Positions 2,709-43,530 of a stretch of DNA of 64,000 bases are shown in pieces. The notes beneath the pieces were generated by a model. That model searched no databases and was not told the DNA's origin. It saw only the letters and a list, made by a program, of their open reading frames with translations. The number at the start of each line of letters is the position of its first letter. Within the stretch, counting starts at the first letter, position 1. The DNA is taken from the sequence record MW021758.1. One strand, given 5' to 3'. Made by a program: the position numbers and the translations under genes.

Positions 2709-2727
2709 GTAGTAATCTATTCAATCT

Positions 2728-2739
2728 GGTAATATATAC
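2728..2739 (-). promoter_or_regulatory. Putative early promoter core (GTATATATTACC)
   Basis: Identical 12-mer at 12726-12737 and 17914-17925, each just upstream of a minus-strand gene; resembles the TATTAC early-promoter motif of phiKZ (recalled). Confidence 0.6.
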
Positions 2740-2855
2740 CTAAGATCCAATGGAGGTATATTGGTAATTTTACAAAATAGATCAATACTCACCAGTAGAA
2801 CTTAATCTACCAGTGAATATCAATTTAGTTTAAATGGGGTTAATTATCCACGCGT

Positions 2856-2978
2856 TTAGGGAGTTCACTTCGTCTTCCCTTTGGTCATCCTAGTTCACTC
2901 TAAAACCCCTAATAGTCACAGACCCTCCGGGCCGTGACCAAGTTCTGACACATAATTGAAACGTACGTAAAAAATGAG
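2856..2978 (-). repeat. Copy A of a duplicated structured intergenic element (candidate sRNA)
   Basis: Shares TCATTTTTTACGT, GGTCACGG..GGA..CTGTGACTATTAGGGG and GACGAA..GAAxTCCCTAA (minus strand) with 43385-43514. Confidence 0.7.
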
Positions 2979-3006
2979 AGCTAAGTAAAATGGCTAGTTG
3001 AAACAC

Positions 3007-3456
3007 TCATTTACAGATAGTACTGAATGGGTCAGTTATAACTAGTTTACCTGATTTAGATAGCATAATGTTACTTGGGGAAAGGTCTAGGTCGTTTACT
3101 TTCATTCCAGACTTATTAACTAATCTAAACAAGAGGATTGCTTTATTTACACATTGAGATAGCTCTACATCAGCTATTTGAAACGGTAGCTTATGGAAAT
3201 CGTTTATAAACGACCAATTACCCTTAAGTATTTCCATCCTATCTTTAGGGACAGGGTAACATTTCTCTAACATGTAAGAACCGATCCCGTTAGTAATAGA
3301 GTGTCCGAGTATCTTAACCACGTCGTATTTATCCCTATCCTCTGAACCGATCGATAACAATGCCATGAACCCGTCATCAGTAGTTTTACTTATTCTAGTC
3401 ACTGTCCCGTCGTGGTTATCATAAACGATCGCATTGATACCTTCGCCTAATTTCAT
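3007..3456 (-). CDS. Protein kinase-like protein resembling the T7 gp0.7 kinase domain
   Basis: LGEGINAIVY Gly-loop, DLSPSNIML catalytic loop, LVITDP; start moved to ATG 3456 after GAGGGT. Confidence 0.7.
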   Translation of the reverse strand: MKLGEGINAIVYDNHDGTVTRISKTTDDGFMALLSIGSEDRDKYDVVKILGHSITNGIGSYMLEKCYPVPKDRMEILKGNWSFINDFHKLPFQIADVELSQCVNKAILLFRLVNKSGMKVNDLDLSPSNIMLSKSGKLVITDPFSTICK

Positions 3457-3463
3457 AATACCC

Positions 3464-4021
3464 TCACTGAATGTAGAATGCCGATTCTTTACCAGCATTA
3501 CCAGGATAAACATCTACCCCAAACGAGATAAGTTGATAGTACAAACTCAAGTGATCGAGGTCGTTTAGTTCATTAGGGTTAACTCGAGTGTCGCTAACGT
3601 ACTGACAGTCAGTTACAACCTTAATCGGAAGGTTAATTCCCCACATCAGCCCTACTTGATGAATTGTCCATTCCAGGTAAACTTTCTTGCTCAGACTTTC
3701 TTCATGAAGGTAGACGTAGAACGACCCCTTCTGAAAACCTCGCTTACAGGTCAGGACGGCGACATCGCACTTTAGGAAACCCAACGTATGGGCATGGCGG
3801 AATAAATGCGCCATTTCCTCTACAGTGGACTCACTGGCAATGCTTTTGATAATATTGTTAACACCAGCATTAAGCGACTGATTCAAGAAAGTCACTACTT
3901 CGTACTGAGTCGTATTCAGTGAGTTGAGGTTAGTTTGCGCACCCTCCTCACGAAAGCCTACATTGCGGAACAACTTACCCGCAGTACGACGAAGATTACT
4001 AAAGACCATACGAGTTTCCAT
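3464..4021 (-). CDS. Hypothetical protein
   Basis: 185-aa ORF with GAGG RBS. Confidence 0.65.
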   Translation of the reverse strand: METRMVFSNLRRTAGKLFRNVGFREEGAQTNLNSLNTTQYEVVTFLNQSLNAGVNNIIKSIASESTVEEMAHLFRHAHTLGFLKCDVAVLTCKRGFQKGSFYVYLHEESLSKKVYLEWTIHQVGLMWGINLPIKVVTDCQYVSDTRVNPNELNDLDHLSLYYQLISFGVDVYPGNAGKESAFYIQ

Positions 4022-6716: not shown

Positions 6717-6768
6717 CGTATTTCTCCTAAAACAAAATAGATCGGAGGGTTTCCCCTCCGCCTATGAT

Positions 6769-13109: not shown

Positions 13110-13211
13110 CAAATCAAGTGTAGCCGGCGTAAATTGCGACCTATTTACGTAAAAAAATAAATCGACTAAGCATAGATCCCCTCTCTACCTATTAAGGTAG
13201 AGAGGGCTATG

Positions 13212-22844: not shown

Positions 22845-23018
22845 TTACTTCCTCCTGTGAAGGTAGTTGTTTATCGTAGCCCTTACCGGAGCACCCAACG
22901 CCATATTGTTGTTCAAGGCGTGTGGTTTGTTCAGGTCGAATGTACCCGTGTGAGGTGCTAATTTGCGCACACGATGATAATCCGCCTTACTCAGGATAGG
23001 CATCCCGCCCAACATGTC
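22845..23018 (-). CDS. Exon 2 of the nvRNAP beta'-N subunit (DMLGGMPILSKADYHRVRKLAPHTGTFDLNKPHALNNNMALGAPVRATINNYLHRRK*)
   Basis: Open 57-codon frame starting with the GAC that completes NCDFDG-D; stop abuts the next gene; absent from the ORF track. Confidence 0.85.
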   Translation of the reverse strand, partial: DMLGGMPILSKADYHRVRKLAPHTGTFDLNKPHALNNNMALGAPVRATINNYLHRRK

Positions 23019-23314
23019 CCTCGGCTAAATGCACCGAGTACTTAACAGACTATATCTTCACTTGATTCTTTCAAGTGCTCCCCGTTTCGGGTTTTCCCTA
23101 CTCTACTCACTACGTTTACCACATCCGTGTTACGTGCTTTCGATAGTCGTTGAACCTTCTCCATTTTACAGGAGCTTGGATGCTGATTGTCTCTATTAGA
23201 TTGTTTTCAAGCATTCACGCTTACCGTTTCCGGTTACGTTGTAGCCAATCTACCTAGCAAGAGTTCCCAGCAGTTAAAGGAGTTTTAAGACGGCAACTTA
23301 GTTGGGTTACTTCT
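23019..23314 (-). mobile_element. Group I self-splicing intron (IA-like), 296 nt, no homing endonuclease ORF
   Basis: P AACUGCUGGGAA (23264-23275), Q AAUCAGCAUC (23179-23188), R GUUCAACGACUA (23144-23155), S AAGAUAUAGUCU (23047-23058); P1 GACGGU/GCCGUC with U.G at the 5' splice site; P9 CUCGG/CCGAG followed by the terminal G. Confidence 0.9.
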
Positions 23315-24592
23315 ACCGTCGAAGTCACAGTTCGGTGCCTTCAGCACTAGCAGCGATAGGCCGATAGTATTGTCGTGCACGTCCCTTTTGATTTTGGTGA
23401 CAAACAGGTTCTGAATCGAACGTAAGTTCAACGTTGGATTTCGACCCAGCAACTGAGGCAGACCACGTTTACCGCTAATTGTCGTAAACGGAGATTCGTC
23501 AATCAGCTCATCCAGCAGTGTGGAGATCAGCGGATTATAACGCCCTACCGAAGAGATCAGTAGATCCTCAGAGTCTTGGATGGTGAATCCGCGACGAACT
23601 AACTTTCCGATCAAGTGGGTGTGATAAACACCTAACGCAATCCCCCACGGCATATGCATTTCTTCATAGTCGTGAGATCCCGCGATAGACGTTACTACGC
23701 CACGATAAGTTGGCCCGGTACGAGATCCATAGATCTGTTTACGGAACCAGCCTTCTTTCTTACCCAGGATGTTCTTGTCGATATATTCCCGATACTTCAC
23801 CAACATCATCAGTGCTCGGAATACGTGATATTCCTTAGTCACTTGATAACGCGGTTCATCTTTACCGACCAAGCTATAAATAGCTCGTGCAGCATCGACA
23901 ACATCTGCATAGCCTTCAGCACAGAAGCGAGTTTTGTTACTAAGCTCCGTGATGATAGACCGGCGAGATGGCAGCGGGAGGACGGTTGGGAACAGGAGAT
24001 CCCTGAACTTATCGAAATACACCAACGCATCGTTACGGTTAGCGGATGGCTTGAATATCTTACTATCTACCATCGCTCCCAGGATGTCATCGAAGTTCTC
24101 GATAAAGTGATTATAGCCACGAGGGATGTTCAGTTCTTTGAACCGACGGAACGTGGCACTGGTATCGTTGGTTGGCTTATATTTGGTGTTACAGAGCCAT
24201 TCAATTGCCGAGAAGTTCTCCTGGGTGAAGTTCTTCAGCAACATGACCAACGCATTGATACGGATGAACGCACGAACACCGTTAGGTGCTCTCAGCCACA
24301 CAGAAGATTTAAACCCTCGATCGATTGGGCTCATCACTTCAGTCTGACATTTCGGACATACCGTGTTAGGGATACTTGGGTCGTTCGATGAATTATACCG
24401 ACCATGGGTGTGGCCACACTCACACGCCGGTAATGTCTCAATGAAGTCGTCGCTATATTCGGTCATGGTCAGTTCTTTGACTGGATCAGTACCTTCATAA
24501 TGCGCCGGGTCGATATCATTGAGGATAATTGGAGGACGAGGCAGAGCTGCGATATCCCTGTCATAGTCCGGATTTAACAGATAAACACCCAA
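23315..24592 (-). CDS. Exon 1 of the nvRNAP catalytic beta'-N subunit (phiKZ gp55-like)
   Basis: Zn finger CECG..CPKC, RNPTLNLRSIQ, ends in APNCDFDG; predicted spliced product 483 aa. Confidence 0.9.
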
Positions 24593-39416: not shown

Positions 39417-39505
39417 GAGAAATCTCTCTTCGTTAATGAACTAAAGGATACTCTAAAGAGAATCCCGTACATAGACTACGATGATGAGTTTATTTTTTAC
39501 GTAAC

Positions 39506-41284: not shown

Positions 41285-41393
41285 TTTGTTTCCTTGTTTT
41301 AACAAAATAGTGAATAGATCCCTTTCCTCTAGAATTAACTAGAGGAAAGGATGAGTTACTCTCGCCATGGTCACTTCGTTATTCCCGGAACGC

Positions 41394-43317: not shown

Positions 43318-43384
43318 CTCTTAGACGTGGATTATTGAGTTATAATCACACTAATTCATCTAGGGTATTTGACTAGCTGTACTC

Positions 43385-43514
43385 TTAGGGAATTCCTTTC
43401 GTCATTACATTCCTCAGTCATTCTAACCCCTAATAGTCACAGGCTCCGCCGTGACCCCTCTTGCGAGATGTCTTGTGTGCTTTTAGCACACTATAAGACA
43501 CGACGTAAAAAATG
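43385..43514 (-). repeat. Copy B of the duplicated structured intergenic element (candidate sRNA)
   Basis: Matches 2856-2978 in four blocks, with length variation inside the hairpin stem. Confidence 0.7.
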
Positions 43515-43530
43515 AATTAAAGAGAGTGGT

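Follow-up and report, generated by a model that had tools for sequence, protein, structure and literature searches.

Here, we analysed a window of 64,000 nucleotides (nt) from sequence record MW021758.1, identical in sequence to record positions 124001-188000 of Serratia phage vB_SmaM_Yaphecito, and found that an intergenic element repeated in it is a covarying RNA structure on the minus strand. The element is a previously undescribed family of structured RNAs of ~80-105 nt, with three paralogues in each Moabitevirus genome and diverged orthologues at syntenic sites in the Klebsiella phages of Maaswegvirus and Siatvirus. Its conserved core is composed of a hairpin (P1) with a bulged U and a G-N-A triloop, a UAUUA linker and a short helix (P2), and a further arm (P3) is inserted into P2 in Moabitevirus only. 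No Rfam family matched the element, and no description of this RNA family was found in the literature or among curated families.

Yaphecito is a phiKZ-like jumbo phage of the genus Moabitevirus with a 275.5-kb genome. It encodes subunits of both virion and non-virion multisubunit RNA polymerases as well as a tubulin. The terminase shares 52-65% identity with its counterparts in Klebsiella phage FBKp24, Erwinia phage PhiEaH1 and the nucleus-forming Serratia phage PCH45 (~38% with that of PhiPA3). The phage was therefore grouped with the phiKZ-like phages that are independent of host sigma-70 promoters. No sigma-70 promoters were found near copies A and B, in keeping with a phage that brings polymerases of its own.

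Copies of the element in the Yaphecito genome

Copy A (~2771-2977) and copy B (~43360-43515) both lie on the minus strand of the window and share the same order of parts: a T-rich box, hairpin P1 with its bulged U and triloop, an AUUA linker, a GGGG strand (P2) and a GA-rich irregular P3 arm. The T-rich box TCATTTTTTACGT is present at 2965-2977 and 43503-43515; with one mismatch allowed, three matches were obtained in the window, a number that was reached in 0 of 100 shuffles. One single-mismatch box, TTATTTTTTACGT at 39490-39502, lies on the opposite (plus) strand in an 89-nt gap and is not followed by an RNA element. The string GTGACTATTAGGGG occurs exactly twice, at 2906-2919 and 43427-43440. 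P1 can be written for the two copies as GGUCAC-(GGCCC or GGC)-GGA-(GGGUC or GCC)-U-GUGACU, and it is followed in both by AUUA-GGGG, by a GA-rich stretch that contains GACGAA and then by CCCUAA.

An earlier note on this DNA had described a duplicated minus-strand element with ordered blocks, and all of the blocks that it listed are indeed present in both copies at the positions it gave. This includes the apical stem of P1, which has 5 bp in copy A and 3 bp in copy B around the same GGA loop and bulged U. The extent of copy A, which had been put at 2856-2978, contains these blocks but has to be lengthened on the 3' side, where the distal partner of P2 (2836-2841) and a terminator that runs to 2771 belong to the element.

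Copy C surfaced in a genome-wide survey of the T-rich box and lies outside the window, 1.4 kb to the left of it (record positions 122445-122582, minus strand, equal to L034 22445-22582). It has the same box, a P1 of GGUCAC-GGCC-GUA-GGCC-U-GUGACU, and then AAUAAG-UACCC, a P3 arm and GGGUA. A first covariance model (R1), built from copies B and C together with the copy of B in phage Totoro and with copy A and FBKp24 excluded, recovered copy A from the whole 275-kb genome with 44 bits (E=4.5e-8). A second and broader covariance model returned the same three copies in the 275-kb genome and no others. Nothing credible as a fourth copy in the Yaphecito genome came from either model, and the weak matches at L036 15862-15886, L035 48692-48770 and L049 15316-15357 (E 4.6-8.7) were taken as noise. 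A covariance-model search, which had been named earlier as a check, has in this way given three Yaphecito copies and, as described below, diverged orthologues in Klebsiella jumbo phages.

The element is a covarying RNA structure on the minus strand

Pair statistics were obtained for a 22-pair structure from a model-based alignment of ten distinct sequences. Standard pairs fill 95.4% of the cells, and this value fell to 32-41% when the 3' partners were slid by 1-3 columns. Both sides have changed in 10 of the 22 pairs (25 cells), and none of 500 shuffles gave values as high. The selection on structure that the earlier note had proposed is thus borne out by compensatory changes. At the base of P1, the G-C and U-A pairs of Moabitevirus are replaced by C-G and G-C in FBKp24. 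P3 shows compensatory changes between paralogues in seven pairs. Its stem is GAGU/ACUC in copy A, GAAU/AUUC in copy B and GUAU/AUAC in copy C; the next step is ACU/AGU, CU/AG or CC/GG, a single R-Y pair is either G-C or A-U, and the cap is AU-GUA-AU, AC-GUA-GU or CU-GAA-AG, or, in copy A, a U-A pair followed by CC-AAA-GG. The Watson-Crick runs of P3 are separated by conserved GA/AG steps.

The strands of P2 read UAGGG...CCCUA in copies A and B versus UACCC...GGGUA in copy C, which has CCC in place of GGG, and GGGG/CCCC, GGUGAC/GUCACC and GACC/GGUC in three Klebsiella phages. The proximal partner of P2 has been lost in both Totoro copies, and the minimum-energy folds mostly take the distal one. 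The Klebsiella-phage copies are devoid of P3 and have an extra hairpin (P4), in which six pairs are compensatory.

G-U pairs are found on the minus strand at four pair positions (19 cells), where the opposite strand would read A-C mismatches, and another five are located in the terminator hairpin of copy A. Those of the Yaphecito terminator hairpin are G-C or A-U in phage Moabite, and the changes seen in Totoro preserve pairing. The RNA is therefore assigned to the minus strand, in agreement with the earlier proposal. A downstream hairpin that had been noticed at ~2785-2818 turned out to be real as well; it forms the central part of a 19-pair hairpin with a T run behind it, and the whole looks like an intrinsic terminator at 2824-2771. 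The predicted copy A RNA of 181 nt has a z of -3.6, and its minimum-energy fold gives P1, P2, P3 and the terminator.

Relatives in other phages and the GGA loop

Searches by blastn with each of the three copies gave matches in the ten Moabitevirus records only. The nearest other genus by terminase is Maaswegvirus, represented by Klebsiella phage FBKp24, and the first 100 kb of its genome contained one model match (E=4e-4), in the gap between gp307 and gp308. By synteny this site corresponds to that of copy B: Yaphecito gp173 has its orthologue in gp308 (31% identity, E=3e-25), and gp175 shows a weak similarity (26%) to gp307. The FBKp24 copy consists of TTCATTTTTTAA, 15 nt, TATG, 8 nt and CGCAC-GGC-GAA-GCC-U-GUGCG-UAUUA-GGGG-(6 nt)-CCCC; two P1 base pairs are swapped, with retention of the bulged U and of UAUUAGGGG, and a plain hairpin is made by GGGG...CCCC. 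Centimanus and the Siatvirus group (KpLz-2_45 and LPKP23 among others) also have related copies. Another FBKp24 region (L050 4990-5262, minus strand), far more diverged, is syntenic with copy A; it is a structured, gene-free gap of 360 nt (z = -5.3) that contains the family motifs GUGACUAUUA, UUAGAGUGAAGG and GUCGUUGACCUUGAC and was detected by neither covariance model.

Exact-pattern scans of IMG/VR for further homologues returned known isolates and chance matches only, and nothing was found in a metagenome scan with the Moabitevirus P1 pattern or in a pattern scan of bacterial genomes. Two IMG/VR contigs, 3300031556_000002 (L038 660-706) and 3300030722_000002 (L041), have a P1-like hairpin, GGUCAC-GGC-UGG-GCC-CU-GUGACU, followed by a terminator. 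Its E-value is 9e-4 but was obtained after preselection by pattern, and the context is unrelated and GC-rich; the hairpin may be either a chance match or a distant relative. No homologues of gp173, gp174, gp175 and gp118 were detectable in PhiEaH1, PCH45 and more distant jumbo phages, and for this reason the covariance-model scans did not take in those genomes.

Yaphecito and Totoro do not differ at all in the 79-nt core of copy C, whereas the proteins encoded just downstream of it share 42% identity. An island of 76-92% identity, set between flanks that align at only 16-50%, comprises copy A with its box and terminator as well as the promoter-like box that comes next. Between genera, P1 and the linker are the same at 24 of 30 nt, with four of the six differences accounted for by two compensatory pairs; the proteins that flank the copy B site are 26% and 31% identical.

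The locus of copy A (window 2709-3513; matching loci L001, L024, L026 and L028) is a hot spot for the insertion of open reading frames (ORFs). The place directly upstream of the copy is taken by gp125 in Yaphecito and by an ORF of 127 amino acids (aa) in both Kodama and Totoro, but is empty in Moabite, 2050HW and ParM-25. Directly downstream, Moabite and Totoro encode a helix-turn-helix (HTH) protein and Kodama has an 88-aa ORF, but this place is empty in Yaphecito. None of these optional ORFs is related to another. The flanks of copies B and C are stable.

One alternative suggested by this arrangement is a DNA-level cassette, in which a promoter and a stem-loop serve as a recombination substrate that shuffles accessory ORFs, similar to the T4-type PeSLs. 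The latter combine promoter and terminator in one motif and are found next to variable ORFs (PMC2839356, PMC4122927). Copy A lies exactly between two ORF-insertion sites, with unrelated optional ORFs across phages, and identity falls to background at both edges of its island. On the other hand, each genome has only three copies, copies B and C are not bordered by variable ORFs, and the paralogues differ by many RNA-compensatory substitutions, where recombination substrates would stay alike. The G-U pairs and tandem G-A steps are also strand-specific features of RNA. We consider such a cassette quite improbable, and the conserved island may itself have led to ORF shuffling at copy A without this being its function. 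The many near-identical copies of a PeSL-like cassette are not seen here: the three copies are diverged, and only copy A has variable flanks.

The earlier note had further interpreted the element as a small RNA (sRNA) that binds CsrA/RsmA and titrates or mimics a target of the host Csr system, based on a GGA loop that it described as fixed. This loop is indeed shared by copies A and B, but it is GUA in copy C and GAA in FBKp24, Centimanus and KpLz-2_45, so that the loop of the family is G-N-A. GGA triplets number 4, 3 and 1 in copies A, B and C and 0, 0 and 0 in the three Klebsiella-phage copies, against 1.4-2.8 expected from composition, and there is no GGA position common to all family members. 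The CsrB, CsrC and RsmX/Y/Z models in Rfam gave no match (E up to 10 for copies A and B, up to 1 for copy C and the orthologues).

Several features do agree with a sponge that presents GGA to CsrA/RsmA in hairpin loops: copies A and B combine the GGA of the P1 triloop with two or three more such triplets, and ACUAGGAUGA in copy A resembles the published CsrA consensus obtained by systematic evolution of ligands by exponential enrichment (SELEX). However, the parts of the family that are conserved (stems, bulged U, UAUUA and G-A steps) differ from the features recognized by CsrA. Because the GGA loop is not conserved, a CsrA decoy is very unlikely, and the earlier assignment is not upheld. The case shows that an argument from "GGA in a loop" that is based on two copies can mislead once more homologues are known.

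Transcription signals, possible function and known systems

Among the oriented intergenic 8-mers of the genome, TATATTAC shows the strongest enrichment; its extended consensus is TATATTAC-N5-TGATAG. Sites are located at window positions 2729, 12727, 17915, 34662 and 49212 (-), with ten more in the genome. This consensus is probably the early (virion polymerase) promoter of Moabitevirus, and it fits the AT-rich class of phiKZ-like early promoters (PMC7598289). A composite motif that joins the T-rich box to a start-site motif, TTTTT[TCG]A[CA]-N9-16-TAT[GA], has 11 sites in the genome, 9 of them within the 7.7% of the DNA that was scored intergenic; the remaining two fall where the deposited annotation has gaps, in one case upstream of the tRNA genes. 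In phiKZ, late promoters have T(-3)ATG(+1) and middle promoters have an AT-rich motif near -24 (PMC7598289). The T-rich box with TATG/TATA looks like the phiKZ middle-promoter motif combined with the late-promoter TATG(+1). We also considered whether the T run could be the terminator tail of the upstream gene; this was rejected, as no conserved hairpin precedes the T run and the upstream sequence of Moabite differs.

A strong terminator follows 12 nt after the core of copy A, and taking G2951 as +1 gives an RNA of ~180 nt. Independent transcription, as suggested in the earlier note, is therefore plausible for copy A as far as it resembles a short unit of its own, with a promoter-like box, a folded RNA of ~180 nt and a terminator; the role in CsrA titration attached to it is not supported. 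AGUGAR of P3 and the terminator's 5' strand might form a competing pairing, which was noticed by eye and has no statistical support. Between copy A and the next gene lie the terminator and another promoter-like box. Small genes follow copies B and C and the Klebsiella-phage copy, a position that fits a 5' leader, with promoters predicted from the motif. The genes downstream of copies A, B and C are mutually unrelated, genus-restricted and without Pfam domains. Terminator-like hairpins with the common tail GATCTATTTTG or a close variant occur in many intergenic regions, such as 6717-6768, 13110-13211 and 41306-41393, which suggests that this tail is a phage-specific termination signal.

The reading that we favour, as possible rather than probable, is that of a cis-acting leader or sRNA module, whose core binds a protein or ligand and influences the termination or use of the transcript, with copy A as the terminating version. 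Each copy would begin a few to a few tens of nt downstream of the T-rich box and TATG/TATA, which would act as a middle-type promoter for a phage polymerase. The folded core would serve a protein, or possibly a small ligand, as its binding platform, and the bound core would act in cis, so that the transcript that carries it either ends early or goes on to use. In copy A, the terminator 12 nt past the core would release a stand-alone RNA, and read-through would bring additional, middle-phase expression to a gene with an early-type promoter of its own. The other copies, namely B, C and that of the Klebsiella phages, would be 5' leaders of small genes. Small RNAs derived from 5' untranslated regions (5' UTRs) by premature termination have been reported in the jumbo phages 201phi2-1 and phiKZ (PMC11512511).

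Several observations weigh against a cis-acting module of this kind. The pair counts come from an alignment that had been fitted to the model and has an effective number of only ~2 sequences, with few independent lineages; the GGG strand of P2 in copies A and B has two possible partners, proximal or distal, which makes this helix ambiguous; and P3 is absent from the B-type copy of Klebsiella phages, so that a part of the architecture is lineage-specific. The 11 composite-motif sites do not exceed the number obtained by Markov simulation (mean 5, maximum 17), and significance is reached only by their confinement to noncoding DNA. The T-rich box and TAT(G/A) are separated by a variable distance of 9 to 15 nt, and the T run is missing from the KpLz-2_45 copy. 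Promoter, start site and transcription of the element as a unit are inferred from such motifs. A clear terminator is present after copy A only, and not after B or C, and the unrelated downstream genes provide no regulon logic for regulation in cis.

The main rival to a leader that acts in cis is a trans-acting sRNA or protein sponge with a partner other than CsrA, either a phage RNA-binding protein such as ChmC, which the earlier note had also mentioned, or a host factor. The three paralogues would then titrate or guide this partner, and the leader position of copies B and C would be incidental, or the sRNA would be processed from a 5' UTR. Copy A has the anatomy of a stand-alone sRNA gene, with a promoter-like box, a folded body and a strong terminator, and the core is far better conserved than the adjacent genes, which have nothing in common with one another. 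Paralogous families of sponge RNAs are also common. ChmC has been reported to bind phage mRNAs and small RNAs (PMC13282480), which likewise counts for a sponge. However, copies B and C and the Klebsiella-phage copy run into ORFs without a convincing terminator, no conserved single-stranded seed of more than ~5 nt is common to all members, and the sequence itself names no partner. Such a sponge appears rather unlikely to us, even though it deserves to be weighed first among the alternatives.

Each copy starts ~5-30 nt past the stop codon of the upstream gene with no terminator in between, and read-through transcripts would carry it. This location, and the richness in duplex of both the P3 rod and the 19-pair hairpin of copy A, would suit an element for RNA processing or stability, such as a site for RNase III or RNase E or a protective end structure, comparable to the intercistronic RNase III sites of T7. 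On the other hand, a simple hairpin that protects an end would need no conserved linker, bulged U or tandem G-A steps, P1 (10-11 bp) is short for RNase III, and three sites among ~330 genes are few for a general signal. A processing element is thus unlikely in our view.

A more specific proposal is that the family is a cis regulator of the multisubunit non-virion RNA polymerase of the phage, acting as a riboswitch-like sensor or as an RNA like put of phage HK022, a processive antitermination RNA, that sets terminator read-through in the phage nucleus. We regard this as a speculative and distinctly unlikely form of regulation in cis; if true, no earlier example of an RNA element that controls the polymerase of a jumbo phage would be known. 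Nucleus-forming jumbo phages use their own polymerases, and little is known about how their transcription and the fate of their RNAs are regulated. A compact RNA that is strongly supported by comparison, with three paralogues per genome and orthologues in phages of a second host genus, offers a handle for finding an RNA-binding partner or a regulatory step, and candidate promoter and terminator motifs are now available for Moabitevirus. The features of copies A and B are collected in Table 1.

Table 1. Features of copies A and B in the window
Feature	Position	Strand	Remark
Copy A, T-rich box TCATTTTTTACGT	2965..2977	-	putative upstream element of a phage middle-type promoter
Copy A, TATG, putative start-site motif, G2951 = +1	2951..2954	-	inferred
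Copy A, P1 hairpin GGUCAC-GGCCC-GGA-GGGUC-U-GUGACU with bulged U and triloop	2914..2939	-	sequence, fold and pair counts
Copy A, AUUA linker and P2 5' strand GGGGUU	2904..2913	-	UAUUAGGGG identical in A, B and FBKp24
Copy A, P3 arm: irregular rod with short Watson-Crick runs, tandem G-A/A-G steps and CC-AAA-GG cap	2861..2900	-	
Copy A, proximal CCCUAA, candidate 3' partner of UUAGGG	2856..2861	-	mutated in both Totoro copies
Copy A, distal AACCCC, second candidate partner of GGGGUU (P2)	2836..2841	-	used by the minimum-energy fold
Copy A, 19-pair hairpin and CUAUUUUG tail, intrinsic-terminator-like	2771..2824	-	also marked as terminator by the Moabite annotators
Early-promoter-like box TATATTAC for the next gene	2729..2736	-	downstream of the terminator, outside the RNA
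Copy B, T-rich box TCATTTTTTACGT	43503..43515	-	
Copy B, extra hairpin between box and P1, GUCUU..GUGUGC-UAAAA-GCACAC..AAGAC	43470..43499	-	
Copy B, P1 hairpin GGUCAC-GGC-GGA-GCC-U-GUGACU	43435..43456	-	
Copy B, AUUA linker, GGGG strand and P3 arm (GAAU...AUUC, tandem G-A steps, AU-GUA-AU cap)	43390..43434	-	
Copy B, distal CCCUAG, candidate P2 3' strand	43360..43365	-	
Copy B, proximal alternative CCCUAA	43385-43390	-	

Several other identities were considered and rejected. A tRNA-like or tmRNA-like element received no support from ARAGORN, which called no gene in the window. A 14-residue peptide could be made from the ATG at 2953 in copy A, but copies B and C have no equivalent, and a plus-strand ORF of 48 codons over copy B has no counterpart at copy A. 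The sequences CUGARGA ... GAAA of a hammerhead ribozyme are present in copies B and C only, where the flanking strands pair into a two-way rod; this core is missing from copy A and from the Totoro copy of B, and Rfam gave no match. An annotation note in Moabite had pointed to an intron in a split terminase. The terminase is intact elsewhere, and the flanking ORFs have neither a terminase domain nor any other shared domain. A group I intron at the element was dismissed too, as the ORF upstream of copy A varies between phages and the Rfam intron model matches 23029-23338 only. At that site (minus strand), a group I intron (RF00028, 58.8 bits) splits an RNA polymerase subunit gene annotated as "RpoBC" into the ORFs 23285-24592 and 22845-23015. 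The uninterrupted FBKp24 homologue, gp331, aligns with the upstream ORF over its residues 1-426 and with the downstream one over residues 429-482.

Among known systems, the sponge RNAs CsrB, CsrC and RsmX/Y/Z resemble the family in being noncoding hairpin RNAs, and copies A and B share the GGA loop with them. CsrB/Rsm sponges carry many GGA sites, whereas the elements described here have 0-4, neither enriched nor conserved, and match none of the corresponding models. Kink turns (k-turns), k-loops and box C/D-like elements are built on tandem sheared G-A motifs. P3 is similar to them in having up to three GA/AG steps, and copy C even has CUGA ... GUGAUGA in the order of a D'/C' k-loop. However, the non-bulged strand is not continuous here, and CUGA is missing in copy A and in the Totoro copy of B.

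Leaders that control elongation, such as riboswitches, protein-binding attenuators and HK022 put, are closer in several respects. They are promoter-proximal, occur in few copies and precede different genes, and they share with this family conserved junction nucleotides, covarying stems of variable length, an optional arm and, in copy A, a terminator right after the core. They differ in that a terminator follows only one copy here and in that no riboswitch or leader family of Rfam matches. To our knowledge, no such leader RNA has been described for a phage multisubunit polymerase. Copy A also shares with PeSL cassettes the layout of a conserved intergenic module of promoter and hairpin bordered by variable accessory ORFs (PMC2839356, PMC4122927); the present family differs from them by its three diverged copies, a multi-helix RNA with compensatory evolution and stable flanks in two of the three.

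The sRNAs of 201phi2-1 and phiKZ that are derived from 5' UTRs have no sequence relationship to the family by blastn, which gave Moabitevirus matches only (the models were not run on those genomes), and one of them is located upstream of a tail gene, whereas the copies found here precede small genes. On the other hand, these phages are likewise nucleus-forming and phiKZ-like, and their sRNAs, described by ONT-cappable-seq (PMC11512511), are short structured RNAs that extend from a phage promoter to a terminator just upstream of a gene. One of the published RNAs, sRNA005, is conserved by position across genera, as is the family described here.

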